A stretch of DNA of 60,986 bases, filler included, from Syncephalis fuscata S228 (Eukaryota > Fungi > Zoopagomycota): NCBI GenBank assembly GCA_025786725.1. It is 3 parts of 3 records of this genome, joined end to end, with 100 filler letters (N's around TTAATTAATTAA, not from the genome) between each part and the next. Parts side by side here need not be neighbours in the genome. Positions count along the whole stretch, not along the records: positions 1 to 27,176 come from JAHLTZ010000104.1; 2 more parts are not named here. The stretch is one strand, 5' to 3'. Of this stretch, positions 1 through 26,201 are shown in pieces. The translations under genes and the position numbers were made by a program. The notes beneath the pieces were generated by a model. That model made no database searches and was not told the origin of the DNA. It was given only the letters and a program-made list of their open reading frames with translations. Positions within the stretch are counted from its first letter, which is position 1; every line of letters starts with the position of its first letter.

Positions 1-3000
1 TGAAGAAGAAATATCCGTAGTAGAGGAAATAGCGGCTAGTGAAGTAGAAGGACAATATAGTGAAGATAATGAAGAACCGTATAGTGAATATAATGAAGAA
101 CCGTATATTGAATATAATGAAGAAGAACAGTATACAGAAAGTGAAGATGACGATAAAACATCCTCTGTCATTTCTATTTCTATGACTGATATGCAAATGG
201 CTTCTATTGATTCACAATCAACATCATCTGAAAACGATAAATACAATTCTTTAATCATGGATTCTGTATCTAATACCGTAACTACTACTACTGAACAACA
301 ACAAGTAGAACAAGTAGATATTAATAACACATTATCAACAACAACAGACTCTTCTATATTATCTACTAAATTAAGTGTACCTCGTTCTCCACGTATCCGT
401 CCTCAAGCACTGACTATTGTTCCACCGACTACTGCTGCACTGTCTACACTCGATCAAATACCTGAATTCGATCTATCTTCATCTCCACCGCCTATTGTAG
501 TCAATTCATTAGATGAAGTGGCCATTAGTGTACCTCTACCCCGATCACCTCGTATTAGACCGTATTTAATGGCCGATATGGCTTCTGACACCCTTGACTA
601 CATGGAAGGAGAAGAGAACCCAGCCATTACGACATTAGAAGAACTATTTGATCCACCTCATTCACCATCTTCATTATCATTAGACCAATTAATACCCAGA
701 TCTCCTAGAATACGCCCTATATCCAACCATTCTAGTATTTGTGGTGATATTGAACCACAAGAGTTGGATGATTCAGATTTATCTTCATTAGATGGACATC
801 CGATGATGTTACCACCATCTCCATTGGTGGAACCATCGATGTTATTACAGTATAATACTATGGACCATCAAGTAGTCTATGGTAATACAAGTACCGGTCA
901 TATGATTACTGAACAGCCTGGTGTACTTTCCATGTCTATTAATGAAGGATTAAATGTGAATAGAACACGTAATTTAACGGTACATCAACGATCAGCCGCA
1001 CCTTCTCCTACTTCATCCATGGGTGGATCTCCATTATTAACCGCAACCCATACATTTGATTTCAATGTAAGTATAAGTATAGATATAATTAATTAATTAA
1101 TTAATTAATTAATAATATATAGGAGTCGGTATCTCCAGTAGAATTCATTCCAAATTATAATGTAGCCACTACGGCTAATACAGATGCCACTGCTTGGTCT
1201 GACTCATCACCTTATGGTGTTACTGTTATGTCATTGCCTTCATATACAGTTAATGATAAACAAGTAGTAACCATGAGTGAAGAGAAGATGGTATTTGAAG
1301 ATACTGATCATCATCATCATAACAATAATGGTGGTGAATTTAAACCTACAACTACAACAACAACAACTACAACAACTACATCTATGAATGGTCTAGAAGG
1401 ATATACAGTCTATAATCCATGGGAGAATGCAGTCAGTCCATTAGTACGTCCTATAGTTGTAGTATCACGTCCACCATCACCTGGATCTAATCTAGAAGTA
1501 TCATCGCCATTATTATTACCTCAATCAAGCATTGAAATAGAAGGAAAAGACAAAGAACCATATGCTGTAACCGTGCCTATTATTATTGAAGATATGAATG
1601 ATATTGAAGATATGAATGATATTGAAGATACAAATATTGATCATATTGATCAATTATCTTCTCCAGTAACTGCTAAGGCTCAATGGCACACTTCAATGTC
1701 TATTGCTACATTTGAAGAGAATCTAGTTCAAATTAAACAATCAGCCGATGAAGCAGATGAACCAGTATCTAATGAAGATGCTTCATTTATATCGAATGAT
1801 GCCTCTTCAATAGCCTCATTTAATCAAGAAGAAAGAGAAGAAAAAGGAGGAGAAGAAGAAGAAGAATGTGTCATTACGACCAATATACTAAATAATAATG
1901 ATGATGATGAACAAGTAAGTAAATAATATAATATATATAATATATATAATATACATAATATACATAATATATACTAATATACATAATATCTATTAGATTA
2001 TTGACTCTAATAATGATCATTTAATACACCATTTAACTGATCAACCAATAGATCATAGTATAAATGAATCTATTAATGAAGATAGTTCAATCAATGATAT
2101 TGTATACAAAGATACACGTAAATCAACTTTGGCCATTCTAGTAGAAGAAGCGGCATTACACGGTGGGGTCTGTGCATCAGATACTGGATCTAATAAAGAT
2201 ACTGGATCTAATAAAGATACTGGATCTAATAAAGATACTGGATCTAATAAAGATACTGGATCTAATAAAGATACTGGATCTAATAAAGATACGGAAGAAG
2301 AATCTATTTTACAAGATGAACATGAAGACAGTATAGATACACCATTTGGACATCATATGATTGCCAGTTCAACATTACAGTCTAATAGTGAATATACCAC
2401 GATGAGTACACCTCAATTAGAACCCACTCAATTACATTTACCATTACAACAACAACAACAACAACCACAACTTGAAGTAGAAGAACCAATAGAACAAGAA
2501 TCAAGTCTTAATTCTATTCTATTACAAGCCACACCATTTAATGATGACATGATAAATGGCATGTTAACTAGTATCAACCCTTCTAATATAAATACCATTA
2601 ATGAATGGCCTATATTATCTGAAGATCAAGCGATATTCTCTCCTATTTTACCGGATGAAGATGCACCTCCACCAATACTACCACCTATATCAGTAACATC
2701 GATTATAAGTATGCCACCACCTGTAGTAACCATTGATGATACAGAAGATGATATAGATATAGATAATAAGGATGTTGTTGTTGTTGATACAGATACAGAT
2801 AAGGATGTTGTTGTTGATACAGATACAGATAAGGATGTTGTTGTTGATACACTTGATACTGATACGCCATTAGATCGACGTCCTTCAGTTCATTTGGTTA
2901 ATCGATCTCATACATTTGGTGATATTCCTTCTACTTCTACTTCTACTTCTACTTCATCTTCATCTTCAACCAAACGACCTACTAAACATCAAAAGAGTAA

Positions 3001-6000
3001 ACAAGTCGATAAAAGTACAAAAGATCCATTATTAAGTAGAAATACCGATATCATCACTCCTATTTCTACTCAATGGAATGCCGCTGATTTACATCCTGGT
3101 CAAGCATTATTAACTCCATCTAATCCATCTAATCCACCATTGTCTACTACTACTACTACTACTATGACCGATACAACTACATTAACTACAATGACCCTAT
3201 TGCCTAGTCTATCTAATAATCAGAATACCAGTATTGATCCATCGGGTACCTGGTCACTTTCTAGATCACTTGATAACCATACCAGTAATACACGATCACA
3301 TCCTATGATGATATCACGATCCATGGGACATCAACGCCATAGTAGTAATAGTCATAAGGGCAGTCATGGTATTTATAGTACAAGTCATGGTCAATATACT
3401 GATCATCATCCTTATCGATCCCATCGATTCAATTCATTGGATCATAAAGTGGATCCGGATAGATTATTAGGATTATCGGCCACTCATGGATTAAGTGATG
3501 ATGGATGGTTATCGATGGATGGTAGTCGATGGATTCCCCCGGCCGATACACCTTCACTTACCAGTCCATACCATTATATGCAACATAGAGTATCTGGGTC
3601 TATTGATGATCAATATATACCTACAACTACTACTCCTACTACAATGACCACTACAATGCATTCACGTCATTTATTAGAGGGATATAATCGAGAGATCCAT
3701 TCTGTATTGGGTGGATCATTTGGTACAACCATTGGCCATCATCATCGATATGATAGTAGTATAGGCAGTCATAGTGGCAGTCATATGCATCGATCATTGT
3801 CTGAACAGTTACCTATAACATCTAATGGTATAAATACAATGACTTCTACCTCATTAATAGGTTCATTATCAACGGAAGCATTACGTAAAGATAAACAACA
3901 ACAACAACAACAGCTGATTAATAATGAAGATGAAGAGGATACTATGAGATCATTATTAACTGGTCCTCTATCTGATACGTATAGTCCATTAACTGATACA
4001 TTTAGTCTACATCTATCCCATTCATATGATAGTAATTATAATAGTCAACATCCTATGGGACATCATACCATGGATAGTATGAATAGTCATTCTACTATAG
4101 AATCTGGATCAACTGAACAACCACCACCTGTATCATCTCAAGTATCGCCACCATTAGGATTAAAAGATGGATCATCTATAGTAAAGAATACACCGCCTTT
4201 ATCAACACGTAAATTTATGCGTCGTTTATCATTTATTAATCAACAATCACCGGTAAGTAGAAATAGATGGATAAATAAATCAAATGAATTTAATGGATCA
4301 TTAATTGATATTTAATTGATTTAATTGATATTTAGGTGAGAATGGGTGGTGGTATTATGTCCTTGGATACACCTCTTGTTACTCCGGGTGATGATTCTTT
4401 TCCTCAAGAATCATATTTAAGTAAACATAAGGGAACAGTATCTAATGAACATGATGAAGAAGAAGAGGAGGAAGAAGAAGAGGAAGAGGAAGAGATTATG
4501 GATCATTCAAGTACAGAAGGGGTATTTACATTTGATAAAGAATCAACTATGACCATAAATCATACTGAAACACAATTATTAAGATCAGACGAGGTAAATA
4601 ATTAATAATTTCATTATTTATTTATATATTAATTAGTATTTGATAGAATTACTTGGCAACCACACCCATAATTCCTATTATTAATATGTCATTGAATAAT
4701 TCACCTAATAATACACAACATTCAACTTCATCCTCTCCATCTTCATTTAAAGATTCGATTCCTCCAACAAATATTAATATATCTAAATGGAGTGCCATGA
4801 CTCGATCACAATTGGATATAATTGAAGAGAGTGAACATAGTACATCAACCACGCCTAATATGGAGAAGCGATTAACATTAACGATGTCCGATCCAACGTT
4901 ATTTAACAACTTGGCCTCTCCTACTTTTGTGAATACCGCAACTGCCGCATCTTCATCGATTAATAGTCCACTTGTTAACTATCATCCCACGAGTGGAAAT
5001 AATAATGGTATGGGTGTGCCATTACTGGCCCAATTGCCATTATCGGCAGTTGGTGAGATGAATAATAATGGTAATGAATTTCCATTTAATATTCTACCTA
5101 ATGAATTGTATGAAGATAAAGAAGAGGAGGAGAAGGAAGAGGAAGAAGTAATGGATAGAATAAAGAAGCGAGTAGTTTATGAAAAGGTAAGCAGTTTAAA
5201 TAGATGATAGATAAATAGATAACTATTAATATATTTATTAATGTATTTATTAATGTATTTATTATAGGATGAGGATGATGAAGATGCCAGGTCATTTACT
5301 TCTTCTCCTTGTTTTGCCCATCAATTATCGTCACCATTTATGCCAACTATGGATTTATTTAACTCATCTCGAACTATATCCAATTCTACTCATACTTATT
5401 CTGAAATGACTACAGAAGAGGAAGAGGAGGAGGAGGAAGAGGAGGAGAAACAACACCGTTCTCTCTTTCCTATATCTAAATCTAATCATCATAACCATAT
5501 AGATCATATAACTGATATGAATATAGGACATGTCTCGAATAGAACCAGTTCTTCTAATTCATCCTCTTTATCAATGCAATCTTATGATGATAATGATGCC
5601 CATCGACCATTATCAGTTCATAGTTTAGAGAAATCGTTATTTGGTGAACATCATAGAAATGTTAGTATAAGTGGACATCATTTACATCATCCACATCAAT
5701 CACCGCCTGTAACATCACCACTATCTCATGATGAAGGTGAATCGACTCGATTACCCTCAGAACGACTTGATCCGATTAGATTTGATCTATTAACACGTAT
5801 ATCTGATCAATTGTACTCACAAGAGATGAGGAATAACTTTGGTGCCCCTACTGTATTAGCGGTAGGTTATAATCATATTGGTACATTTAATAGAATTTAT
5901 AGTAACATGGTGAATGGAATAGGTTGGTGAATGGTTAGCGATTGGTACATCGAGTGGTATGGTGGTACTATATGATCATACTCAGAATCTACGTACTATT

Positions 6001-9000
6001 CTACGTCGTAAGTTAGTTAGTGTCTATGTATAGATGGTTATTAATTAATGTATATATATGTATATATGTATGTATGTATATGTATATGATAGATACGGGT
6101 GTTGTAACGGCAGTGGCCGTGGCGGCTAATGGGTTCTTTGTTATGGCCGGATTTGCCAATGGATCGATTGTTATATGGGATGTGCGTAAAAGTGCCATTA
6201 TTCGACATATTGAACCACTACCCCTACAACAACATCATCGTAATAACAGTGGTGATTATACAGGTAGTGGGGCGAGTAGTAATGGGGCCCAATTACTTGC
6301 TTATACCGCCCAACGTATTATGAAACTATCCTCGGTCGTTGGTCGTAATACGTCAAATAGTAATGCTGGTGGTAGTGGTGGTAGTCATCATCAACGCTCC
6401 TCTTCTATACTGACGAGTCGAGCGACGATTGGACATGAATGGGGATCGGCCATTTTACATGTTGAATTTGTTGGTAATCAATCTCATGAAATTATTACTA
6501 CCGATGACCAGGTAAATTTGAATAGTATATTATATACCACGCAAATATACTGATGGATATATATATATATATGTGTGTGTGATAGGGATTGGTGTTTTTA
6601 CATCGGTTGGCTAAAGTGGCGGTTATTCGTTCAGTGGATACTTTCCATGTATTGGGTCGACGTCGTCGTAATGGTCCATTATCAATGACCGCACAAGGCA
6701 TGCAACCACCAAGACGGGCCGGTACTGTATTTAGTGTATCTTCATTATCGATGGGGGTCATACAACATCCGGCCGATACCTTTGCCTTTATAGCCATCAC
6801 CACACCGGTTAAAGTAAGTAGTCAATAATATTATTTATATTGGTAAAGGTATTTATCATGAATGTAGATGTTAATTATAAGTACGAAACCGCGTATTGAG
6901 ACGCATTTCAAAGTTATGAGATCGGAAAAGATGATGGCTCAAACGATTGAAGAAGAAGGTATAATGGCCACTTGTGGATGTACAGCTTGGTATTCAGCCA
7001 CCCTTGACGAAGGAGGTAAGCGTATATATATATATATATATATACTAGTACTAATATTATATAATGGTATAGAAGCGGCTGATCCATTACTTGCGTATAG
7101 TTGGGATCATCGATTGGCTGTATTAAGAGTTATTGGTGATTCAGTTGAAGAAAAGGAACGAGGCGGTATATTAAGACGCCAATTACCACGAATTACCTTT
7201 GTTTATGTTAATGAATGGCGTGGGCCATGTCCCATTGTAGCCATTCAATGGATGACGCGTAAAGTAAGTACCTATAGAACATATAGAATATAGAGTAAAT
7301 ATTAATATGTTTATTATTACTAGATGCTTGTTCTTTATACAAGTGAAGATGAAATGCTTGTATTTGATCGATCGGCCAATCAAGTTACTGAACGATGTGA
7401 TTTACGCGCTGTTCGACTTGTTAGTAATAATCGGTTTATGACGCCCCTTGAAGAGGATATCGATGAGAATGATGAACATTCATCTGATTTAGAACTGGCC
7501 TATTACCAAAGTGTACGATCACATAAAGGTCGAGTCTATCTACTAGTAAGTATTAATATAGCCTATAATGTTGTTAGTAATAATAATATCTGGTAGGGTG
7601 TTGATCGATTGTGGATGGGTATGCCATTGTCATGGGCAGATCGTATTGATGCTTGTGAACAGAATGGTGAACTGTTAAAGGCCATTGATATTGGTATTGC
7701 CTTAATTAATGGGGCACCCGGTCTATCAACAGTTGGATTGCCGGATGATGATCTACAGAGACGTGTTGTGGTTGGTGCCCGTTTAATGCAATTAATACGT
7801 AAAGCCACGAGTATTACCTTTGCGATTGATCGAGTGGGTGAACGACATCCGCGTAGTTGTCGTGAATTGGCCCGTGCGTCTATTGAAGCCAGTTTATGTA
7901 TTGGTATTGAATCGTTTTTATTTGATGAAATCTACGAGACATTTTGTGAACATCAGTGTAGTCACTGGTTTTTGGGTGCATTGGCCAAGGCAGTTCATCG
8001 ACGCCGTATTCATTTATTGCCACCGGTAGTGGCTCAAGATCTTATTGTTTATTTACGTGGTCAACCCAAATTACTTGAAACGATTCTATTACACCTTGAT
8101 TTAACCACTCTTGATATTGACACGATTGTTTCGGTTTGTCGACGTGACGGACTATGGGATGCACTTATATGGGTATGGACGAGGGCTGTACACGACTGGA
8201 TTAGTCCAACGGTTGAACTATTACAAGTAGCACGACAACTGGCTGGTAATTCAGAAAGACGCGTTAAAGAGATTCTCGATCAGTTACTCGCCTATTTCGA
8301 TCACGTATTACGTGGTCGTTGGTTCCCTTCACTATCGGATGAATCGTCAAACAACAATGACCATTCGGATCAACAACGAAATCGACGACATCGACCGCGT
8401 AGATCGTCTAAATCGGCCACCCGTCGTTATTGGGACGAGAAACGAGATATCATCCACGATAAGGTTATATGTCATAAGGCGAAAGCATCTATTTATCAGT
8501 TTATATTTTCATCTACGGCTATTTACTGGCCTGAACAGCCAGCACCGGGAAATCCATCAAGTGAATTGGTATTGGTTGATGGTATTCTAAAACAATCAAC
8601 TGGTTATGAAGATTTGGATGATTTACAGCCCTATCCCTATTTATCTCTGCTGCTTGACTATGATCCAAAGCGATGGCTTGATACCCTTGAACGAGCATTT
8701 AATGATGATAGCTACTTTGATTATAAAGAGCCAAAAAATGAAGCGAATAATGGTGATGAAGGCGAAGACCAAGAAAAAAGTACAGCACATACTAGACAAA
8801 CAATTGTGGATGCTCTTATTAAATGTGTTTCGCCGTATGCGCGTAATAACTTTACTACCGTGCCGGCCACCTTTGTTTGTATCTTCTTGGCCCGTCAATT
8901 ACATCAACATAGCCGACATGTTCAATTGACACCGGATACATTAGAGGCAGTATTAATTCGATTAACTACCGATTCAACAACGGCATTATACGGTGCCACG

Positions 9001-11283
9001 AGTGATACACGACAGGCAGCCGTACAAGAATTGCTTAAAGTCTACATATCACCACATACGAAACAAATGACCGAGTTATACGATCGGGCCGGTTTCTATA
9101 GAGTACTTGAAACAGTCTATCGTAACGAACATAATTACGGCAAAGTAGTTGAAACGTATTTACGTGATCCAGAACGACGCAGTCAAGTATTTGACTGTAT
9201 TCGACGATTATTAAGCGATAAAAGTCGATCAGTCGAGAAGAGTCGATTACTGCAAAAGAAACGAGCCCATGTACGCACATCGGTTATGGGACTAATGCCC
9301 CAACTGGTTAGTGTAGATGGTGCCCAATGCGCTCGATTAGTAGCCGATTTATTCGAGGATCAACATGAAGAAGTGGTAAAACTACTTGAACCTGACCGTT
9401 TCCTTGTATATGCCTACTTGCACGGTCTATTCGAAGCACGTCAACGGGTAAAACGATCTTTATTACGTAAAAAGGCTAGACAAGCAAGTGACCTAGCCAG
9501 TAGTTCACCCACCGGCATGACAGTTACTACTTCCGCCACCACCACTACTACTACTACTACTTTAATTAGTGGTCAAAAAAACAGCCATGTACTTTTGGAT
9601 GATTTCCCTGGATTACCACGTATGCTTGAACGGTATATTGAACTACTTTGTGAACGACATCCTTCATTGGTTCGAACATTCCTGGCTGATCATGAAGAAG
9701 ATGGTATTTGGCTAAATAGTGCCCTGACCGTCTGTCGTGAATACGATGTTACCGATGCCATTGTATGGATACTTGAACGACGTGGTGATCTTGTACAAGC
9801 CTTAGAGGCTATTCTTATTAAAGTGCAAGACTGTGTTATTCAAGTAACAAAACAATTGGCCCGTGATGCCATTGATCATTTTACAGATGCCGCTGCTTCA
9901 GTCGTTAGTGATTGGCAACACCAGCACCACCATCATGGATCGATTGACTTACTTGGTCGATATACACCGCCACCACGACTACCCATGCAAACCGCTAGCA
10001 CTACAACGGACGTGTATCGCGCTGTAGATGCCATTGTATTGTATTTAAGAATGGCGGTAGAGTTGTGTGAGCGCGTTAGTACACGTGTATTAACGGCCGT
10101 AGCTAATGAACGGGCACAACTTGAACACCAAAGTGAAGATCTATGGTTTATGCTACTGGTACAATTTGTAGATGCGTATCGTACATTAATGGCTGCAGCC
10201 ACTGAACATGCACCTGCACCCTCTTTATCATCTAGATCAACATCGCTAATACCACCAACGCAAGAGCCACTTGATCCATCGGGCCAAATGATACGCGGTG
10301 GCTTATACGAAAGTTTAACGGAACTATTACAAGCTACCGCATCATCCGGTGTATCGCTGCCCAAGCTGCTATTACGTCTGGTTAAATCGGACGCAGATAC
10401 TAATGAAGAAATAGCGGATGAAGAGGATGATATGTATTCTAATGAGGCGGGAACGACAACGGCCATGGCTACACCTAGACTATTTGCCGATTTACGTGAT
10501 GTCTTTTTTGGTATGCTTGATTTGTATAAATTCGAGGCCCAATTACGTCGAGTGGCCCATCGACTTATCGAATCGGATGTGTTTAGTGAAATGCGTTTAG
10601 CAGTGCACACCCGTAGTCATGGATGGCGAGCCATAAATGGCGGTGACTGTGATCGATGTGGACGTCGTCTTTGGTTAGATGCACGTAATCCATGTGCACG
10701 CGCCCCTATCAATGCAATGCAAGTATTTGATTCACCTTTACGTTGGCCACATCGCCCACAACAGCAACAGCAACAATCGTCATTGTCACTATCAAATACA
10801 ATTTCTAGATCTACGGGGGTGACGGCAAGGGCACAGGCAAAAAGAGCAATGAGTTATGATAGCCGTATGCATTCCCATTATAGTCCAGCTAATACATCGA
10901 CACTGCCCACCACAAGTAAGGATTGGGCGGTAATGATGTATCGATGTGGTCACGCTTTTCATCAAACATGCTTATTACCGACCCCGCCTATAACGACAAC
11001 GGCAAATGTACCGACATCCATCCCACCACCACCATCTATTTCTCGACAAAATTCACTAACCACTTCTATACTTACGACACATCGACTACTATCACCACCA
11101 CTATCGCCTAGTTCGTCATTGCAGCCACAACAGCCGCAACACTCCTATCCTATAAGTGAGCACCAAAGTGATGAAGGTGAAGAAGTTCAACTATTCTCTG
11201 CTTCATCACTACCTTCTGCTCAATCAAAGATGCCATGTCCAGTTTGTCATCCGCCGCGTATATTAACGCATCATCGAATTTAA
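1..11283 (+). CDS. VPS8: CORVET subunit Vps8 (multi-exon, 5' end outside window): very long disordered N-terminus, WD40 beta-propeller, helical/clathrin-like repeats, C-terminal RING-H2
   Basis: Frame is open from base 2. ORF pieces are joined by GT-AG introns. WD40-type segments (GAPTVLAV, VTAVAVAANGFFVMAGFANGSIVIWDV, AILHVEFVG). Vps8-domain text (LSWADRI, LETILLHLDLTTLDIDTIVSVCRRDGLWDALIWVW). RING ligands CDRC / CGHAFHQTC / CPVC. Stop at 11281-11283. Confidence 0.85.
2180..2290 (+). repeat. In-frame 18-nt tandem repeat (GATACTGGATCTAATAAA x6, DTGSNK) within VPS8 N-terminus
   Basis: Directly visible perfect repeat; a second DKDVVVDTDT repeat lies at ~2765-2850. Confidence 0.9.
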
Positions 11284-11419
11284 TTAAATAAATAGTATTA
11301 CTATGATTATTAAATAGGCCAGTCATGGGATAATAATGATATATTACTACTATATTGTAAATACTGGCAATGTTGTTATTGGCTTATTTATATTTTGTAT
11401 TATGTTGTAGTATTTATAA

Positions 11420-11885
11420 AATATATAAGTAGAATGAATAGAAATAATTTAAAGGCTGCCACAAACACAATTAACTGCGAATAAACAACAGTTATGAATA
11501 AAGCATATTTAATAGAACAAATACTAAAATATATGAATAATGAATTTAATGCTACAATGCATATATATATGGGTGAATAAGTAAAATAGTCGATATTTAT
11601 TAATAATACTGCTAGAACAAAAACAAATACGGCTTTGGGTAGCGGAAGACTAGGAGGGTATAGAATGATATATAAAATAATGAATGTATGGTAAGAAAGC
11701 ATATATGATAGCATGGAATAGAATGGGATGATATAGATGAATAGAGTGTATGTATACTGAATAATGAATCTATAATGATGAGTATTTTGGACCCTGATGT
11801 GAATTACTTCTTGTTTCCTGTTCAATAGAAAAAAAGTCTAATTTAAATGTATGAATGTTATTAAATGCAGTTATTTAACCACCAA
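11420..11885 (+). mobile_element. Degenerate copy of the dispersed inverted-repeat element (right part)
   Basis: GAGTATTTTGGACCCTGATGT at ~11781 and the following GAATGTTATTAAA...ATTTAACCACCAAA match the element end at 31539-31745. The spurious ORF here resembles spurious ORFs at 31222 and 33398. Confidence 0.65.
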
Positions 11886-12070
11886 AGTACAATAAATGAG
11901 TAATAAATTGCATTTAGATTACTAAATTTATTATTTAAATAGTTATATTGTATGCAATGTAATAGAATAGAAGCATATCATAGTAAAAATATAATATTTA
12001 TTGTTTTTTGTACTTTATAAACTAAATACACTAATATGAAATATTTACAAGATGGTGCCTAATTAGTTGG

Positions 12071-14695
12071 TTAGTTTACATAGCAACGACTTAATAAACA
12101 CTTACATCCATTGCTGATTTTCACTCGTTTTTCCTGAGTATCAGCAGTCATTGAATGCGACCGCTTAATACCACGCTGAGGTGTGGAAGCCTCTTGGCAA
12201 GCTGTTGTCTCTTCGGCTTCTTTGTCGTCTTCAGTTTGATTACTCTCTTGCTGTTGACTTGGTTCTATCTCGGCTTCTTCTTCTGGTAACTTCAATGCCG
12301 GTTCTTCTTGTTCTTCTTGAGTCACATCAGCTTCAGCAACCGTATCTTGTGGCTTGTTAAACCAAGAACTTGCCAATGCCTGCTCAATAGTGATACGTGA
12401 ATCGCTGTTAAGAGCAAGAAGATTGCGCACCAGTTCGCGTCCTAGTAATCAATAAATATTAGTTCTATATAATTATTGTTTGATTTATTTACCTTCTTCT
12501 GATACTGCTTCCCAAGTATCATCGAATTCCAAAGGATTGTTTAATAAATCTAGAGCATAATCCTCGACGATAACATCTTCATTACTATTTTTTACATATG
12601 GTAATGTATCTAAATATAAAGGCATTAGTAAAAAATGACAGCTTTATAATCACTTACTTGATAGCATGTAATGTAATGTAGCACCAAGGCTCCACACATC
12701 AACTTGGTGGTAATTGCTGGCTGTCAGTTCCATTGTATTCGAGGCTGCTTGCGGATTAATATCAATTTTTTTAGCTTTTGCAATTGCTAAATTTTTAAAA
12801 GCTGATTTTAGAACCATTTCTGGTGCCATATAACCTAGTGTTCCACGCTTCTTTCTTGGTGGCGGTGAATCTGGAACAATTTTCCAAGCAGCACCAAAAT
12901 CTGTAAGGACAATCGTTGGGTTGTTGATGCACTTTCGCAGCAATACATTTGCTGGCTAATGTAGACACGGTTAATTTCAGTCATTTTTAACATTTCAAGT
13001 ACTTACTTTTATATCTATTTGATAGCAATACGATTAACAATGATATTTGTTAGTAGCAATAATAAACAATTATTTCAACTTACCACAGTGAACAATATGC
13101 TTACTGTGTAAAAACTATTCAAAAGTCATTAATAAATTATTGTATTATGTTGTTACTTACCTTTACTGCTTCCAGCAGCTGTTTAAAAATGTGCCTAGCC
13201 TCATCTTCAAGAAGAGGGCCATGTTGTGCACAATAGCTGTGTAAATCTCCGCCAGCTACATATTCAAGCACCAAGTAGCTGTACATTGCTGTTTCATGCA
13301 CATCAACTACTTGAATAATGGCTTGATGTCATTGCGCCATAACAAGTATGGTGTTTTCATCAGCAAAGCTATTTATGCAAACTTCTTTGGCTGCTCCCTT
13401 GATATACTTTTTGTCGGATATTTTGATGGCAACAGGTGTTTTGTTGTTGCGTATTTCTCCATAAAATACGCTGCCAAAAGCACCACTATTTTATGTTATC
13501 AATATGTTAATTTAAATGATATAAGTACTTACGAACCAAGCCGTTGTGTTGTTACAGCATATTTGCTGTTGATTGTCTAGAAATGTGTTAGAGGCTATAA
13601 CTGCTGTAATTGTAATATTGCTGACTTACTGTGCCAAAATCAGGACTTGGATCTCGATTCTTAATGTCAACTTTTTAATCAAATATATAGCATAAAAAAC
13701 TAGTGCCATTGATTAGTCGTGATTATCATAGACTAATAAAACTTACAATTGCAACCAGATGGCTGGATGCTGCTATTATTTTTGATGACACATGTAGCAT
13801 CGGACCTAATGCTGACACCATCCACTAAATAAAATAATTAGTATTGTTTAGTAATTTATAATAAATCTACTTACCCAAAATAGAACTGGACATCAAATTC
13901 TAATTACACATTTAGCACCATTATTATTAGTATGATAACTACTTACTTTGCACATCATTATTTCATTTTCCTAAATATGGATTAAAATTAGCATTGTTAT
14001 TTTAACATAATGATGTGTGCTGCTCACCATGAATATGCTAAAATAATCGTCTTGTTTTTTCCTCTTCCTCTTCCTCTCCTCGCTCGCACTAAATATTACA
14101 AATTATTATATTAATAAAATTGTGTAATGTGTCAATCAAACCAGCAATAGTTTAGTGTGTTTACATTTGCTAAATAACAGCAAATTATGGCACAGCACTA
14201 TACCAATAAGACACCAGTATTAAACACTGCATAGCTTACCTTTCTGAGCCTTGCCCAAAAGTGTATTCTTCACCTCGCATCAAGAGGTGTTCTTTGAATG
14301 AATGGTTATTTAAATGGTCTATTAACTGTATATTTACTTACCTGTGTCGTTTTCATCCGACACCTCAACCCAGCCTACAATCTTGGCTTGCTCCGCCAAA
14401 CTCATTGCCGCCCAAGCAGCAGGGAGTCTTTCGTAAATGTCCCCCACTGAATTGTTTGGTGTTGTGAATGGCAAAGCAAGTGCAGGTAAACAAGGAGCAT
14501 CTGATGGCTGAGCCACCACACACTGCTCTTCAACAACATCTTCAGCGGCGGAACTATATTAGCTTCAGCCGCAGGCGCTAATGATGGGGATGGCGATGGC
14601 GACAAATGTGCGGGTGGATTGAATGGCAAGCGAGTGGGATTTGCAACAGATACATCAAGAGAACTACAAGCAAATGGATTACCTGGACTGTCCAT
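12071..14695 (-). CDS. CAMK-group Ser/Thr kinase with N-terminal FHA-like region (Chk2/Dun1/Mek1-like); carries an in-frame TGA and a frameshift, possibly a pseudogene
   Basis: Spliced translation gives LGSGAFGSV, VAIK, LVLEYVAGGDL, HCDIKPANVLL, LTDFG, GTLGYMAPE, VDVWSLG and RITIEQALASSWF. Upstream GEEYTFGQG ... WVDGVSI resembles a diverged FHA domain. TGA at 13329-13331; frame change near 14555. Confidence 0.7.
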
Positions 14696-16131
14696 ATTGC
14701 AGTTATGTTTTAATGTAGAGTTTGTTTAAAACTGGAATATAAATCAAAATACACGTATCAAATAATGATGTAAAACTTTGGAAAGGTCAACTACGCGAAT
14801 ACTATATTAACAACTCATACATTTATTTAATAAATAGGCTAGCAGACATGGGCGATGTGTCATAGTACATTTGAAACAGCACCATTACGACATGGCTAAT
14901 TGCGCTATGAATGTGTTTCTAAACATTTGGCTTTTTATTAATCATATGTCAGTACATGACCAATTGGCTAGCAGTTGTACAACAAACCAATAAGTGCAAC
15001 TGATTGTCAAGTTTGAAAGATGTGTTGCTGAAACCACCGTTACCGATTGGGAAACGCACTGTGCACACACGCAGTAGCACAGAGTAAGCATTTTGAGAGT
15101 TAGTTTGACCGACATTCATACGCAAATAGTGGGCATATTTTAATAAAGTTTATGCAAAATATCTGGCAATATGGATGCTACTGAAATAAATAAATTATAA
15201 CTACGTATTGAATAGACATAATATTTGTTAGCTGTATGTCGTTACTATAATATAGCAAGTTGTTTAGGAAAGTAGCCAAGTGCTAATGATTGATGCTAAT
15301 GACACTGTGTAACATGCATGGGAATATCAAGTAAATCGGCTTTACAAAAACGTTTGTTTCATAGCTAAGGCCCGAATGTATAGCTTACTGTACACACTTG
15401 CAAATTATTTTCACCAAAGATATTTAAGAATTCAGTGCAAAGTCTTTTATTTCAACTGAGTGTTATTTCAATATCGGTTAATAGCATGCATATCTTATTT
15501 AACTGTAATTTGCTTAGACATATTCCATCAGCTGATGATGATTTAAACAAGACAGCAATCTTGAGATGGTAGTATGCTTATCTTTGTGTTGCGCCATTCT
15601 TTTCACTAGCTTGCATTTTTGCTAGCACTGACATACATATCCATTGAAGAAAGCAATGAAACAAGTTCAAACTGTTTCGTAATTGTATTACCAAGATAGA
15701 TAAGCAAAACCATCATTATTTGTTCATTTACATTAGATTGGTATATTGGTAACGCAATAATCCGTATTCAACCATTTTATTTTTACTGAGTCATTGCACT
15801 GTTCAATTGAACAGATAGCGCTTTGCCTTGCAATGACATTCGCCCTTACTGAAATATACATTTATGTTACACATCACTGCATAGCACGCCTCTCTTTGAG
15901 CTGGCCTATTCTGTTTCTTTTTTCGCTCCGCCTAATGGCTTCAATTCATTGGATAATGCTGAGTGCTTGCTTCTGCACTAAACACACGCGTGTGCCTACA
16001 TAATATATCCCTCATTAAAACACGTAATCTTAACTACGCTTTTTTATTTTACATTTGTTCTTTAACTAATTAGCAGTGAATTCCACTATTCTATATGTTC
16101 ATAAACTACAATGTTTAGTGGAATTCATAGC

Positions 16132-19100
16132 TTTATATAGCACACTGTAACTGCTTGCTTGTGAAGCCATACAATATGCAACTGCTCGGCTTTATTAGAT
16201 AAACTAAAAATGATGGAACGGCGTACAGTTGGATTGAATGTGATCGACGCTCATATTATTTTGGGGATTTAATTAAAGCTGTAGACCATTCTGTTTGTTG
16301 TATGGTGGTGTTTATCTATATACGCTTGGGTGAGCGGTATAATAAGCACCATTCCTTGCCTGTGGGCAATATTAAGTACCATCATGGCAGCATCATTGTT
16401 TTAACAGTTAAAGTGCTATGATGGCACAACATCGATTTATAGTGCTATATTAATGTAGCTTCGATGCTGTTATCTTTAGTTGTCTATGAATGATGATGTA
16501 GTTGTGTTGGCTACCTAATGTCGTGACAGTGTGCTATTGTACCATCATTGTTGCATTTGATTATCTACTCGTATGTGGATGGCCTAGACGGGGTATGGGA
16601 TCAGCGTTATTGGCTGTTCGTTCCAGCTATCTAGTCAATGTATGTCGCCTGGCTGAATAGCTTTTCTGATATTGCTTGAACATAAGCAATGGTAAAACAG
16701 CAACCACGGCACATCATGATTACGATAGCTGGAGACTGTATAGGCCGGCACTGATGGGTGGGAGTTTAGGCCATCAGCATATATCAGATAGTTTATATTT
16801 AGCATTATATTTGGACTATTAAATGGTATTAGATGGCCATCTAGATTTACGAATAATACAACATAATGGCAACTACAAAAGGTAAATATAGTATATTGTG
16901 TTGATTAGTTACTAATACTGAATAACATACATATATTGATTTTATATTAATTTAATGATTTTTATTGCGTTTTTGTTTTTATTTATTTTCTAACTAATTA
17001 CTAGGCATATTACATAGTTCTATACTTTTAACTGTAATTTGAAGCACCTTTAAATATTTATATAGCACACTGTAACTGCTTGCTTGTGAAACCATACAAT
17101 ATGCAACTGCTGGCTTTATTAGATAGATTAAAATGAATGGAGTGCTGGAGCAGTAGTTTGAATCGACCACTGCATAGCATTTTAGCATTTAATTAAAGCT
17201 GTAGACCACTCTGTTTGTTGTATGGTGGTTTTATCTATATACGCTTGGTGAGCGGTATAATAAGCACCATTCCTTGCTTGTGGGCAATATTAAGTACCAT
17301 CATGGCAGCATCATTGTTTTAACAGTTAAAGTGCTATGATGGCACAACATCGATTTATAGTGCTATATTAATGTAGCTTCGATGCTGTTATCTTTAGTTG
17401 TCTATGATGATGATGTAGTTGTGTTGGCTACCTAATGTCGCGACAGTGTGCTATTGTACCATCATTGTTGCATTTGGATTATCTACTTGTATGTGGATGG
17501 CCTAGACGGGGTATGGGATCAGCGTTATTGGCTGTTCGTTCCAGCTATCTAGTCAATGCATGTCGCCTGGCTGAATAGCTTTTCTGATATTGCTTGAAAC
17601 ATAAGCAATGGTAAAACAGCAACCACGGCACATCATGATTACGATAGCTGGATACTGTATAGGCCGGCACTGATGGGTGGGAGTTTAGGCCATCACATAC
17701 ACCAGATAGCTTATATTTAGCATTATATTTGGACTATTAAATGGTATTAAATGGCCATTTAGATTTACGAATAATACAACATAATGGCAACTATAAAAGG
17801 TAAATATAGTATATTGTGTTGATTAGTTACTAATACTGAATAACATACATATATTGATTTTATATTAATTTAATGATTTTATTGCGTTTTTGTTTTTATT
17901 TATTTCTAACTAATTACTAGGCATATTCATAGTTCTATACTTTTTATACTGTAATTTGAAGCACTTTAAATATTTATATAGCACACTGTAACTGCTTGCT
18001 TGTGAAGCATACAATATGCAACTGCTCGGCTTTATTAATAGATTAGAAATGGTGATATTGGAGCAGTTGTTGAAGTCGGCCTACATTCATTTTAGCCATT
18101 TAATAAAGCTGTAGACCACTCTGTTTGTTGTATGGTGGTGTTTATCTATATACGCTTGGGTGAGCGGTATAATAAGCACCATTCCTTGCCTGTGGGCAAT
18201 ATTAAGTACCATCATGGCACATCATTGTTTTAACAGTTAAAGTGCTATGATGGCACAACATCGATTTATATGCTATATTAATGTAGCTTCGATGCTGTTA
18301 TCTTTAGTTGTCTATGATGATGATGTAGTTGTGTTGGCTACCTAATGTCGTGACAGTGTGCTATTGTACCATCATTGTTGCATTTGGATTATCTACTTGT
18401 ATGTGGATGGCCTAGACGGGGTATGGGATCAGCGTTATTGGCTGTTCGTTCCAGCTATCTAGTCAATGCATGTCGCCTGGCTGAATAGCTTTTCTGATAT
18501 TGCTTGAAACATAAGCAATGGTAAAACAGCAACCACGGCACATCATGATTACGATAGCTGAGACTGTATAGGCCGGCACTGATGGGTGGGAGTTTAGCCA
18601 TCACATATACCAGATAGTTATATTTAGCATTATATTTGGACTATTCAATGGTATTAAATGCCATTTAGATTTACGAATAATACAACATAATGGCAACTAT
18701 AAAAGGTAAATATAGTATATTGTGTTGATTAGTTACTAATACTGAATAACATACATATATTGATTTTATATTAAATTTAATGATTTTAATTGCGTTTTTG
18801 TTTTTATTTACTTTCTAACTAACTACTAGGCATATTACATAGTTCTATACTTTTTATACTGTAATTTGAAGCACCTTTAAATATTTATATAGCACACTGT
18901 AACTGCTTGCTTGTGAAGCCATACAATATGCAACTGCTCGGCTTTATTAGATAACTAAAAATGACTTCGACGGGATACAGACATTGAGCGAGATCGCGCA
19001 TAGCATTTTGGCATTTAATTAAAGTGTAGACCATTCTGTTTGTTGTATGGTGTGTTTATCTATATACGCTTGGGTGAGCGGTATAATAAGCACCATTCCT

Positions 19101-20487
19101 TGCCTGTGGGCAATATTAAGTACCATCATGGCAGCATCATTGTTTTAACAGTTAAAGTGCTATGATGGCACAACATCGATTTATAATGCTATATTAATGT
19201 AGCTTCGATGCTGTTATCTTTAGTTGTCTATAATGATGATGTAGTTGTGTTGGCTACCTAATGTCGTGACAGTGTGCTATTGTACCATCATTGTTGCATT
19301 TGGATTATCTACTTGTATGTGGATGGCCTAGACGGGGTATGGGATCAGCGTTATTGGCTGTTCGTTCCAGCTATCTAGTCAATGCATGTCGCCTGGCTGA
19401 ATAGCTTTTCTGATATTGCTTGAAACATAAGCAATGGTAAAACAGCAACCACGGCACATCATAATTACGATAGCTGGATACTGTATAGGCCGCACTGATG
19501 GGTGGGAGTTTAGACCATCAGCATATACCAGATAGCTTATATTTAGCATTATATTTGGACTATTCAATGGTATTAAATGCCATTTAGATTTACGAATAAT
19601 ACAACATAATGGCAACTATAAAAGGTAAATATAGTATATTGTGTTGATTAGTTACTAATACTGAATAACATACATATATTGATTTTATATTAAATTTAAT
19701 GATTTTATTGCGTTTTTGTTTTTATTTACTTTCTAACTAACTACTAGGCATATTACATAGTTCTATACTTTTTATACTGTAATTTGAAGCACCTTTAAAT
19801 ATTTATATAGCACACTGTAACTGCTTGCTTGTGAAGCCATACAATATGCAACTGCTCGGCTTTTATTAGATAAACTAAAAATGACTTCGACGGGATACAG
19901 AACATTGAGCGAGATCGGCGCATAGCATTTTGGGATTTAATTAAAGTTGTAGACCATTCTGTTTGTTTTATGGTGGTGTTTATCTATATACGCTTGGGTG
20001 AGCGGTATAATAAGCACCATTCCTTGCTGTGGGCAATATTAAGTACCATCATGGCAGCATCATTGTTTTAACAGTTAAAGTGCTATGATGGCACAACATC
20101 GATTTATATGCTATATTAATGTAGCTTCGATGCTGTTATCTTTAGTTGTCTATGAATGATGATGTAGTTGTGTTGGCTACCTAATGTCGTGACAGTGTGT
20201 TATTGTACCATCATTGTTGCATTTGGATTATCTACTTGTATGTGGATGGCCTAGACGGGGTATGGGATCAGCGTTATTGGCTGTTCGTTCCAGCTATCTA
20301 GTCAATGCATGTCGCCTGGCTGAATAGCTTTTCTGATATTGCTTAAAGCATAAGCAATGGTAAAACAGCAACCACGGCACATCATGATTACGATAGCTGG
20401 ATACTGTATAGGCCGGCACTGATGGGTGGGAGTTTAGGCCATCAGCATATACAGATAGCTTATGTTTAGCATTATATTTGGACTATT
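16132..20487 (+). repeat. Tandem array of five ~680-nt conserved cores separated by four ~240-nt AT-rich spacers (period 925, 916, 911, 918 nt)
   Basis: Unit starts (ATAGCACACTGTAAC) at 16137, 17062, 17978, 18889 and 19807. Similarity ends at GGACTATT ~20487. Copies are near-identical except one ~40-nt segment. Confidence 0.97.
16137..16820 (+). ncRNA. Putative large structured ncRNA (unit 1 of 5), unknown family
   Basis: No conserved ORF. At least 10 stems read by eye, e.g. 16137-16151 with 16523-16537, GCCATACAATA/TGTTGTATGGT, GGTGTTTAT/ATAAGCACC, CATCATGGCA/TGCTATGATG, ATTGCTT/AAGCAAT and CTGATGG/CCATCAG. Imperfections are mostly G-U on the + strand. Confidence 0.65.
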
Positions 20488-21964: not shown

Positions 21965-24367
21965 TTACATACTAACAATTTTATCACTAAATAGATCATT
22001 AATGAATCAATGAACGGTTATTAATTGGCTCAGCACACGTGGTTGTAACAACTTACCGATACTCCGTGATATTATCCATAGTAAGCACAACTAGATCTCG
22101 CTTTGATAGTGGCTGTTTTGTAATAGGACAGGTATTGCGAGGTTCAGAACGAGTTAGACAGCGTACCCAGTTATCGTAGCTTTACGTGTCCATAACCGTA
22201 TAGTTGGCAAATAGTAAGCAATAATTTTAATAGTATTAGTAATGATAGTACTTACCCCATAACATGGCCGTGTGGAGAAATGGCCGGTTTAACAACTTCT
22301 TCTAGGGTAATTGGATCGATATAGCCAGGTAGTGGATTAATAGCACAATTGGCTACACGGCCACCACCGCCACCACTGATCATGGCCTCGGAATAGACGG
22401 ATATATCGTCCAAAGGTGTTGATGCTTCACTGGCTATTTCCGTCGAATGGCCTGTTGCATGCGACGCTGTATTTACCTCGGTAGACTGGGCGGCCATGGT
22501 TACTGCGGCACTACCCGCTGCACGTCGACTAGCCATGGCACGGGCTCGTTTCGTAGTGCCATAGCTTGACGATGAAAAGCTGCGATAATCACCGGAAAAG
22601 TCATCATCGCGTTCACGACCATAAGCCCAATCGCTGTCTGAGTTATCGGTTGAACCGTAGCCATCGTCCGAGTCCCGTTTAGTAACCTGTCGGCGTCGAG
22701 GCCGTTTAGTGGGTGCAGCAGCCGTAGATGCAGCTTTAACTGGCACTTGCGGCACTGCTGTTTCTGTCGATTTCTCCGGCATAAACTCACGGTTCTCTTC
22801 GTCCGAGTCGTCTTGATTTGCCGACCGACGAGCACGTGGTTTGCGCTCCACATAGCCTGAACCATCTCGTCGATGTTTGCAATGGGTACGGAATGTTTTA
22901 CGACCATCCTTTGTACTAAACAAATAGTGTGCCTTGCCCTTGTCATCCAGTACATAGTTAGGATCTTGAATCTTGTTGGTTTCCACTAATTGACGATAAT
23001 AGTTGGAACACTATACACAGTACACATGATTAGTCGATAGTAAATAACAAACAACGTGTACCTACTTGATAGCCAACACGGCCTGGTATAGCGATGGAAA
23101 ACACGCCCCATTGACCATTAGCGCCCATTTCCTTAAGGCGCTGATGAAATAGTTTTTGCTCGTACTATAGCCTACAATTTAGACTATAACCTTCCATCGT
23201 CGTCACTCCTCCTACCTGTGTCCATGGGCCTGTTCTCTGTGGCTCATTGGGAGCATTAAATCGATAATAGTATGAATTGGGATTTTTATCAATCGCCTTC
23301 CAAGCCTTTTTACGCGCCTCAGACCATCCTTCCATTGCAGCATCTGGATTCTCGCGCATCTGTTTAAGCGCATCTTCTAGTCGAAGCCGGCCTACTTTTT
23401 GATATTTCCTATTATTAACGATTAGCCATACAATGTCATACAATAGCATGCCCTCATTACCGGCGTGTCTCATCTGTTACATTCTTCTTCATAGTTGTTG
23501 TACGTTTACGCAACAACTGCTCATACTTTTGACGTTCCTCGCTTGTCATATCATCTTCTGATTCTGTTATTATTTTAGTATTAATATCCATTACTAAATA
23601 AATAAATAAATATGCCGTCTACTTACTAATCTGGTCAATCTTGGGATATTTTTCAGCCAATTCTTTACGTATCATAATCAAATACATAGGCTGTGACAGA
23701 TTAAGAATAAGCTCGTCCTATTATCAATGTCGCCTACATTAGCTTAATTTTACTTATTAATGACTAGCATATAACTTGCCTCATCGTTATCCAACTGCTT
23801 TAGTGCACAGGCCACTTCTTCATTGGTAATATAATCGAATGTTTGTCGTACTTTATCTACTTTGCGACGCAATTCACGACGTTCAAACTCGGCAAACTAA
23901 TAGCAATTATAGTGTTAATGTGTGTACCTTCATCGTTTACGACTTACTTGTTTCTGTTGCAGTGCCACTCGTTGTTGAATAATATCGATTTCATTTTCGG
24001 TCATTTCCTCTGCAAACATGTTACTTTTACGTACAATGCCAATACGTTCACTGTATGTACATTAACTGGTTAACACAATGTATATTTTCCCATTCTAAGC
24101 GTTTTATGTACCTAGCCTCCATCATTTCACGTACACGCTGTGCACTCTCATCCTCAGGTCCTTTGCCATTGCTAGATTCCTCTTCAATTTGCACTACACC
24201 AGACGCTGCTATTTGGTCATTACAGTTCAATTCTGCTTTACGGCCGTCTCGTCGCTGACGTAATAGTTGCTATAACAACAAAGTTAACATTATAAACAAA
24301 TGATCTGTTTTGCGTAATCAATACTTACAAGAATGTTTATAGTTGCTGTCTCCGACATGGCTGCCAT
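21965..24367 (-). CDS. Myb/SANT-domain protein with C-terminal U-box/RING-like domain (multi-exon)
   Basis: NPNSYYYRFNAPNEPQRTGPWT...KLFHQRLKEMGANGQWGVFSIAIPGRVGYQCSNYYRQL is SANT/Myb-like. GYIDPITLEEVVKPAISPHGHVMGYDNWVRCL...TCPITKQPL is U-box-like. Canonical introns; ATG at 24365-24367, stop at 21965-21967. Confidence 0.7.
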
Positions 24368-26201
24368 ACTTGTTTCCGTTATAATAGTGTAGATACACAG
24401 TAATAGTCAGTAGTGTTTGTTAAATAAATAATGCCAACAAAGAAAATTAAAAGAGAAAAAAGGCAACGCGTACACGTCGCGTTTTAAACAAACAAACAAT
24501 TACCACCATTAGGATTAGGATTAGTATAATTAGAATCAGTGTATTATTATTTGTTTATTATTTGTTTATTAATGATGTTTATCAGTTTATTTAAAACTAT
24601 CAAAATTGATTATTAATAGTCCAAGTATTACCCATTTACCCACTTTTATTAATATTTTACTAAAATGATCTCAATATTTGTACACTTTCATAATTACTGT
24701 TACCATTACTATTACTGTAAGTGTATACTACTAGATTTGCATTCGTGGGTAAGTGTACATTTATTATTAACTTTAATGGACTGTTGTTATTGTTGTTATC
24801 AATATGCACATCTGTTCTATGTACACACGTTCAATTGAAGATCCTTACATTTAATTAAAACGCCGCCTTCAATTATTACTCCTTTCTCTCTCTCTCTATG
24901 GTTATATCAATCTATACTGACTCCGCCTCGGACATCTGGCTGTTCCCCGTTGATCAATTGGCAATTTTACAGGCATTTGCATATCTATTTTAATTTAGTC
25001 ATTTGTTGTTACCACCTGTTACTAAATAAATACATCCTTGAATTAACAATATTGCGGTATGACTTTCTGCCTTGTCACTGCCACACGCTTCTTTTCGGAT
25101 CAACCTTTAACAGTAAACCCAGTACAACGTTTTACTACCTTGGCATACTGTCCCTGAACTCAATTATTCACTATCGCCTTTAGTATTGCCACTGCATGGT
25201 TCTCTAACAGCAACACCTTTCTATCTCTTTATTCGATTATTGATTTCCTTTTCCTTGAACGCTTAGAGCTTCTTCTTTCTAAACTTTTTGCGGCAATTCA
25301 CTGCACACCTATATACACACACGCACCAACTACACTCGTTTTCCATTACGACGGTTATTCGTGCTTTTAAGTGTAGATTCACAGTCTTTACTGCGAATCC
25401 ATTTGTGTTTGCACATTCATTTACAAGTCGATATTGGGGCGCCGTTATCGTCTATCTTTCTATCTCCTCTACTAACTCTCTTTCTCAATTTGTGTGTGTG
25501 TGTGTGTATAAGTGTGTGAATGTATGCTTAAAACCACACTCACCACCACCATCGATCTATTTCTCCCTTTCTCCTCTTTCTGACTATTCCCTTCTCACTC
25601 TTGCTCACTTTATTAACAATTTTACCACTGTGCTACTATCACCACTGCATAATTTCCTTTCTTTTCTGTAGTTGTCTCTGAGTGTTTCAACAAGTAATAG
25701 CAATTCTGCAAGCTAATAACTACAACACACCTCATCACTAGCAATAGTAGCAGTAGCTGCAGCAACGACGACGACAATACCAGTAATAACCAGCAGTAGC
25801 GTGGCGCTTGTGTAAGCACGTGTATCGTTCTATGCGGCATACATCATACTGGTCATTCACTACTTACTTGCATCTTCTTTGTCAATTACTTGCCAAGTAA
25901 ACGCGCCAACTTTTCGGTAATAAGTGTAAGTTTTTAATATAAAAACAAACAATAACCACATCTTGTACTTACATTAGCTATTAGGCTGGCTTTTTATTTT
26001 CAGCACTGCCACGAGTTCTACTGTGCTGTATTAGTCTGAACGTGCTCATCATTCTTGGCAGAACGGTGTTAGAGATTCTGCTATACAGTAATCTTGTAAT
26101 TTCAAACGACGGGCCTTGTCGATTAGTGTGCTAGATTGTATTGCTTGCTATTTACCATCATTTTATGCTACAGCCTATCTACATAGCTGCAAGTATATTC
26201 C

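Follow-up and report, generated by a model that had tools for sequence, protein, structure and literature searches.

A probable new family of kinase-linked structured RNA, found as a spliced tandem array in Syncephalis fuscata

Syncephalis fuscata is a zoopagalean fungus that lives as an obligate haustorial mycoparasite. A 60,986-nt stretch of strain S228 (assembly GCA_025786725.1; three parts of three records joined by filler, positions 1-27,176 coming from JAHLTZ010000104.1; hereafter the window) carries a tandem array of non-coding units at 16132-20487, head-to-head with a Chk2-like kinase gene. The analysis of this array and its relatives leaves little doubt that a new, expressed, kinase-linked structured RNA family exists. 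The RNA gene has stayed beside the kinase gene in dozens of duplicates, across two kinase clades and in two species, and the evidence suggests a type of RNA-protein pair so far undescribed in eukaryotes. Bacteria are well known for large structured non-coding RNAs that have a dedicated protein partner; to our knowledge, such partnerships are rare in eukaryotic nuclear genomes.

The array comprises five tandem units that start at 16132, 17057, 17973, 18884 and 19802 with a spacing of 910-925 bp, the last ending at about 20487. A preliminary description of this DNA had taken a bare core of ~680 nt as the unit and the closing helix as its edge. The actual repeat is 918 bp long and consists of a non-coding exon (785-795 nt) plus a GT-AG intron of ~123 nt, and the sequence common to all family members begins at about 15760, well upstream of that helix. 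Since a unit-to-unit junction is present in the DNA run, the tandem is real and not an assembly artefact. Transcription was read from run X1, to which all RNA contig depths refer; X1 is RNA data, because its contigs leave out the kinase introns at CT..AC joints. A splice joint in X1 removes 16882-17004, a GT-AG intron whose branch point is CTAAC; every array spacer contains a matching intron, its ends read from the sequence. This joint lies on the + strand; therefore, the RNA comes from the + strand and each unit is one exon. The gene is laid out as follows.

15760-16131, + strand: promoter and 5' leader common to family members (homology among subfamilies from 15760; RNA coverage from ~15882)
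15882-16881, + strand: exon 1, RNA copy 1 (5' end approximate)
16882-17004, + strand: spliceosomal intron 1 (GT...CTAAC...TAG, 123 nt; X1 spliced joint, depth 1599)
17005-17799, + strand: exon 2, RNA copy 2 (tip 17137-17172)
17800-17920, + strand: intron 2 (ends as in intron 1)
17921-18705, + strand: exon 3, RNA copy 3 (tip 18053-18086)
18706-18829, + strand: intron 3 (ends read from sequence)
18830-19624, + strand: exon 4, RNA copy 4 (tip 18965-18998)
19625-19747, + strand: intron 4 (ends read from sequence)
19748-20487, + strand: exon 5, RNA copy 5 (tip 19885-19920; the end is that of the RNA copy and approximate as transcript end)

The + strand transcript that the preliminary description had predicted was found as a spliced and abundant RNA in X1. 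Contig depth is a rough measure, in which the reads of all RNA copies pile on one unit: the leader contig (15882-16160) reached 344 and one tip variant 384, and all contigs summed over the repeat unit gave 6,000-18,000, compared with 2-9 for the kinase contigs. The locus-specific leader alone amounts to ~40-170 times the kinase depth, and RNA contigs as a whole are 40 to several hundred times deeper than kinase contigs. No X1 contig covered 14950-15824. The longest ATG frame per exon spans only 33-47 codons, unlike that of a protein-coding mRNA, and length-changing indels all along the family alignment argue against a conserved reading frame. The array is best explained as one gene of RNA polymerase II type with several exons, whose product is a structured non-coding RNA.

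The predicted fold of copy 1 contains two domains, a conserved motif present twice, and a hypervariable tip.

16137-16537, + strand: domain 1, with closing helix, twin-motif segment, hairpin A, hairpin B and long hairpin C
16151-16163, + strand: conserved CUUGCUUGUG motif, first occurrence; it hardly varies among 30 copies and is also present in S. pseudoplumigaleata
16213-16251, + strand: hypervariable tip of hairpin A
16355-16366, + strand: second copy of the motif (CUUGCYUGUGG), which could form a local hairpin or pair with the first copy via two 2x2 U/U loops
16578-16775, + strand: domain 2, one long irregular rod closed by GATGGCCTAGAC/GTTTAGGCCATC

Folding z-scores on the + strand were -5.1 for copy 1 and -5.1 to -6.2 over the five copies. 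The - strand also scored well (-1.6 to -8.5), so that the z-score alone leaves the strand undecided and the splice joint decides. In an alignment of 30 copies, the 197-pair predicted structure was kept in 97.0% of cells, with two-sided changes at 20 of the 197 pairs, and a control with shifted partners lowered the pairing to 29-53%; RNAalifold by itself returned 155 pairs, 14 of them two-sided. These counts reflect perhaps three or four independent lineages, because the copies form few related groups. The RNA forms long imperfect G-U-rich rods (69% paired), the longest unbroken helix being 12 bp. The closing helix proposed earlier (16137-16151/16523-16537) is present with 14 of 15 pairs and is paired in 97-100% of cells across the 30 copies. 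Three proposed local stems, CATCATGGCA/TGCTATGATG (60% paired), TGGGA/TTCCA (61%) and TATCTAC/GTGGATG (73%), are not conserved in the dispersed copies, the long-range helices that compete with them being 98-100% paired, and TTGCC/GGCAA and GTAGTT/GGCTAC may still form as alternative pairings. Changes that preserve pairing occur across the 30 copies and a second species; together with the spliced, abundant transcript, they uphold the view that this large + strand RNA is under structural selection. Just ahead of the closing helix, at 16072-16132, copy 1 carries a separate hairpin, GTGAATTCCAC/GTGGAATTCAT, which many dispersed copies share.

The five cores were recognized correctly in the preliminary description, but they are not near-identical throughout, as the tip of hairpin A differs strongly. 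The distal ~40 nt of this hairpin is hypervariable: scaffolds that are 97-99% identical carry tips with 28-60% identity. Copies 3 and 4 share 97% identity outside the tip and 28% inside it, and loci L016 and L017 share 99.3% in the scaffold and 44% in the tip. Because one-base indels are frequent in the assembly, an isolated difference between copies could be an error, but the tips differ by far more than that. Within tip classes, change in the tip runs at two to six times the scaffold rate, with a larger share of transversions. A three-pair terminal stem was found in 19 of 24 tip variants, which are related to one another (shuffle mean 12, p 0.005); it is flanked by variable 3-5-nt loops, and the variable single strands are just 4-6 nt each. 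Several tip variants are expressed in X1, including one that is not among the fetched copies. The tip appears to be under diversifying selection, because gene conversion homogenises the scaffold yet spares the tip, and relaxed constraint alone would not protect it.

A role of the tip as a guide was examined through its sequence matches. The best of them, 15 nt at window 11579-11593, resembled a target site but falls within an AT-rich dispersed repeat; outside tips, the genome has just three places for it, close to the chance expectation. Tip matches in the DNA examined stayed at chance level, host and virus sequences not having been searched, and no recombinase or nuclease gene was seen near the array in a comparison with bridge RNA and H/ACA-type guides. 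A second, independent tandem at L028 and L030 (contigs C304 and C320; also C234) joins a domain-1-only copy via intron sequence to a full copy, showing that the tip-bearing domain 1 can duplicate alone.

BLAST gave 43 matches to the RNA in the S. fuscata genome and a model search 42 strong ones, and a domain 1 model added nine weak matches. Contigs C335 and C329 carry the window's locus with flanks 98-99% identical and with three and four units, respectively. They are taken as other haplotypes, given the same locus, the near-identical flanks and the different unit number; the haplotypes differ in copy number (5, 3, 4) and in tip content. About 30 further copies are 69-78% identical. These dispersed copies retain introns and kilobases of common flank, whole multi-kb cassettes having been duplicated, and no distinct insertion ends were seen among them. 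The shared flank is unlike the behaviour of a miniature inverted-repeat transposable element (MITE), the alternative raised in the preliminary description. The RNA copies lie in fast-evolving multicopy regions, many of them near contig ends. A second RNA subfamily has a much shorter hairpin A; it is known, like most of the kinase paralogues, by coordinates and scores alone, and a gapped twin-motif pattern designed for it matched only kinase and repeat-gene sequence.

The gene opposite the array encodes the putative protein partner.

12071-14695, - strand: intron-rich FHA-fold plus Ser/Thr kinase gene (Chk2/Rad53/Mek1 architecture), placed head-to-head with the RNA gene; its 3' end is approximate

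Its identity follows from Pkinase matches in the exons and from spliced joints in X1. The window's kinase was searched exon by exon, and the public protein records of an allele and paralogues were also used: allele P0007 and paralogues are recorded as S. fuscata kinases, and a relative of the kinase exon is 87% identical. The FHA domain was seen by fold only, in the N-terminal domain of paralogue P0009, and is too diverged for Pfam; the look-alikes of the kinases are Chk2, RAD53 and MEK1. The VAIK-type lysine and the HxD, DFG and APE motifs are intact. On the predicted fold, this is a Chk2-type kinase, in which an FHA domain precedes an intact kinase domain. It resembles Chk2, Rad53, Dun1 and Mek1 in placing an FHA fold before a CAMK-group kinase domain, but differs from them in its more than 60 diverged loci, its Pfam-invisible FHA domain and the RNA gene that its strongly linked copies face; nor was an N-terminal SQ/TQ cluster found in these kinases. 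The loci are clustered on few contigs, often near contig ends. Five near-identical assembled copies of the window's kinase gene (C262, C312, C329, C335, C7) suggest more than two haplotypes or a local duplication. An apparent frameshift in its first exon (window 14558-14600) is probably an assembly error, because the RNA contig over it (14461-14786) differs by a single gap only. A micro-exon of ~8-9 nt near 13000-13007, encoding DIK residues of the catalytic loop, was read as letters inside a splice joint.

The pairing of the two genes recurs across the genome. Of the 30 strong RNA loci, 16 face a paralogue of the window's kinase in head-to-head orientation, 3.0-3.3 kb away, and four more share upstream DNA that contains the kinase start; the C329 locus is split by a contig end. 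Six of the nine weak RNA matches are head-to-head with kinases of a second clade (clades from a quick tree) at 2.5-3.0 kb, compared with 0.5% of positions expected, four of these six being one duplicated cassette. Tip class (84-91%) and kinase-exon signature are common to C235/C330 and C3/C134; the intergenic DNA is not. Because the RNA class follows the kinase class despite replaced, unrelated intergenic sequence, a link between the products can be argued. In S. pseudoplumigaleata, at one locus, a second-clade kinase has both motifs in order ~650 nt upstream on the opposite strand; this motif pair scores 19.8 with a profile made from S. fuscata only, against a shuffle maximum of 11.9. Domain 1 topology is possible there within 3.3 kcal/mol of the minimum of the predicted fold, with unrelated stem sequences and a shorter hairpin A. 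The kinase contigs L033 and L034 and a Vps8 relative, L031, showed no RNA or had too little upstream DNA. That the kinase gene has retained a folded RNA of its own over tens of duplications and across a speciation points to direct RNA control of a checkpoint-type kinase. Two narrower ideas were discarded. A strict rule of one tip per kinase is contradicted by near-identical kinases beside unrelated tips; antisense action, with the partner kinase gene as target, gave a best 21-nt score of 17.5 against 17.5-18.5 in controls, neither species exceeding its control. As the RNA is not antisense to the kinase gene, a role as folded ligand is more likely.

A targeted literature search found no precedent for a protein-RNA toxin-antitoxin pair in a eukaryote and none of the papers searched combined the relevant terms; the S. 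fuscata lineage is not mentioned in two fungal structure screens (PMC8216456, Ascomycota only; PMC5640933). In a pattern scan of metagenome and viral contigs, the domain 2 motif was absent, and four matches to the cross-species motif, none accompanied by the second motif or by a kinase, were treated as chance. The preliminary description had placed the RNA outside known families; consistently, Rfam 15, with its families for rRNA, snRNA, snoRNA, SRP, RNase P/MRP, telomerase RNA, group I/II introns and ribozymes, gave no match at the gathering score for the window RNA and, in E-value mode, only chance-level matches for it, three paralogues and the S. pseudoplumigaleata copy.

Abundant structured RNAs that restrain a protein kinase are exemplified by adenovirus VA RNA with PKR and by 7SK RNA with P-TEFb. 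Those are RNA polymerase III transcripts of 160-330 nt, unlinked to the kinase gene and present in single or few copies, and the S. fuscata RNA matches no Rfam entry. In bacterial type III toxin-antitoxin systems, an abundant structured RNA, sometimes made of tandem non-identical repeats, is encoded in linkage with a protein gene and binds its product directly (PMC12283969, PMC8860590). The tight linkage of a protein gene to an abundant structured RNA, and the tandem non-identical repeats, are shared by the S. fuscata pair with ToxIN, CptIN and TenpIN. These bacterial systems contain a ToxN-fold endoribonuclease, one operon and short pseudoknot repeats, whereas S. fuscata has no ToxN-type toxin but a eukaryotic FHA-kinase, divergent transcription, spliced exons of 800 nt and a putative binding. 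The fungal poison-antidote drivers wtf (PMC5478263) and Spok (PMC6660238), the latter with a kinase domain in its proteins, likewise exist as dozens of dispersed, fast-diverging copies shuffled by gene conversion; both of their parts are proteins, and the S. fuscata pair is known from sequence and RNA data, not from drive or spore killing. Drosophila hairpin RNAs (hpRNAs), which silence meiotic drivers (PMC10292708, PMC10317233) and are tied to genetic conflict, are also spliced, with long imperfect hairpins and tandem forms, but are antisense to their targets, which the S. fuscata RNA is not to its partner gene. Overall, the S. fuscata pair falls outside type III systems, hairpin RNAs and mobile elements, and its logic is closest to that of the type III systems.

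By analogy with the type III systems, it is tentatively proposed, at somewhat less than even confidence, that the RNA binds and restrains a harmful partner kinase as its antidote or inhibitor. The RNA would be the dedicated partner of the oppositely transcribed Chk2-like kinase and act as a folded ligand, not via antisense pairing. Its conserved core, with the twice-present motif and the long rods, would bind the kinase, perhaps as a dimer, and the bound RNA would keep the kinase off in the manner of an RNA antitoxin. On this view, the cassette would serve as a poison-antidote module, selfish or defensive, in which the tip may serve as a specificity surface under diversifying selection and the array may supply several tip variants from one promoter. 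The RNA excess over the kinase contigs fits the surplus that an antidote would need, and the variation of copy number and tip content between haplotypes is a pattern like that of the wtf killers (PMC5478263). The proposal also draws on the recurrent gene pairing in both species, the lack of complementarity to the kinase gene, the RNA classes that follow kinase classes and the intact catalytic motifs. Several observations weigh against this proposal. The window's single kinase faces four tip types, and the kinases on C305 and C190, 95-97% identical, stand beside tips only 52% identical; at six RNA loci the divergent neighbour is another gene, one with 18-residue repeats; and about 40 kinase matches have no detected RNA, though diverged partners would be missed. 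Most kinase classes were assigned by identity to a single query exon instead of by aligning the paralogues, and the motif-motif helix shows no two-sided change and has a pairing probability below 0.01 in single-sequence folding.

Near-identical kinases with unrelated tips, and the four tip types per kinase here, would fit an RNA sensor that gates the kinase: a kinase-binding scaffold whose tip detects an external molecule (RNA or protein of viral, host or non-self origin), the array being a repertoire of loops on one signalling enzyme. Tip diversity exceeds kinase diversity, 99%-identical scaffolds bear unrelated tips, the small terminal stem is kept while loops change with many transversions, and several variants are expressed. 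No target was found, however, tip matches being at chance level in the examined DNA; the variable single strands are short for a base-pairing guide, and hairpin A is much shorter in the second subfamily. The sensor is a possible but rather doubtful alternative. Slightly more doubtful still is a eukaryotic RNA-programmed kinase, in which a constant scaffold would hold the Chk2-like kinase and an exchangeable loop, with a repertoire in dispersed genes and tandem exons, would decide what turns the kinase on. The mycoparasitic lifestyle, the very high RNA abundance and the location in fast-evolving multicopy regions, many near contig ends, would suit a host-directed effector or decoy, for example one that binds host RNA-binding or RNAi proteins, is co-regulated with a kinase effector and has a tip evolving against the host. 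This is unlikely: delivery evidence was not found, the kinase N-termini look cytoplasmic by eye, and an effector role alone does not explain the fixed gene pairing.

The head-to-head layout and the duplication of whole multi-kb cassettes could instead reflect a divergent promoter-associated RNA that acts in cis on kinase transcription, or a passenger in segmental duplications. About as unlikely as the effector, if not a little more so, this account is opposed by the pairing that stayed though intergenic DNA was replaced, by the structure conserved across species, and by RNA far exceeding kinase mRNA; hitchhiking gives no hypervariable tip within a homogenised scaffold. A precursor of small RNAs silencing the kinase family or other targets is improbable. 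The splicing, the tandem form, the imperfect G-U-rich rods and the hpRNA precedent speak for it, but no 21-nt antisense match to the kinase gene rose above control in either species, the longest unbroken helix is 12 bp, and it is the loop tip that varies, whereas small RNAs would derive from the stems. Least probable is a non-autonomous mobile element, or part of one, such as a MITE, a short interspersed nuclear element (SINE) or a retrozyme. It draws on the 42 copies and on the dispersed AT-rich repeat found past the kinase 3' end here and inverted past the RNA elsewhere; yet introns are kept, kilobases of flank are shared, no distinct insertion ends were seen, no ribozyme or tRNA-like part was found, and the position is the same in the second species.

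If the RNA is an antidote, the pair would be a protein-RNA toxin-antitoxin system in a eukaryote; if the tip sets specificity, the family would form a naturally occurring library of recognition loops carried by one constant scaffold. Both genes are of a size that can be tested in yeast.

The surrounding DNA holds further genes and repeats.

182-11283, + strand: Vps8 gene with an unusually long, low-complexity N-terminal region

Genome-wide, the AT-rich dispersed repeat at window 11584-11910 has several hundred candidate copies. Here it follows the 3' end of the kinase gene; in many dispersed cassettes it follows the 3' end of the RNA in inverted orientation. It could represent element ends or a common 3' element. 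The gene that replaces the kinase as divergent neighbour at six RNA loci is multicopy (L015:3-776, that is C305:58727-59500; also C370, C343, C33, C345, C24 and C359). Its first exon encodes lysine- and acid-rich 18-residue repeats, with no Pfam or Atlas match. At window 22252-24390 on the - strand, an intron-rich gene shows by eye a Myb-like segment and a RING-like end; the exons tried gave no Pfam match. Compared with window 11800-17040, run X6, another sample labelled as this species, shows a strongly directional set of differences, nearly all of them G>A (87) or C>T (32).

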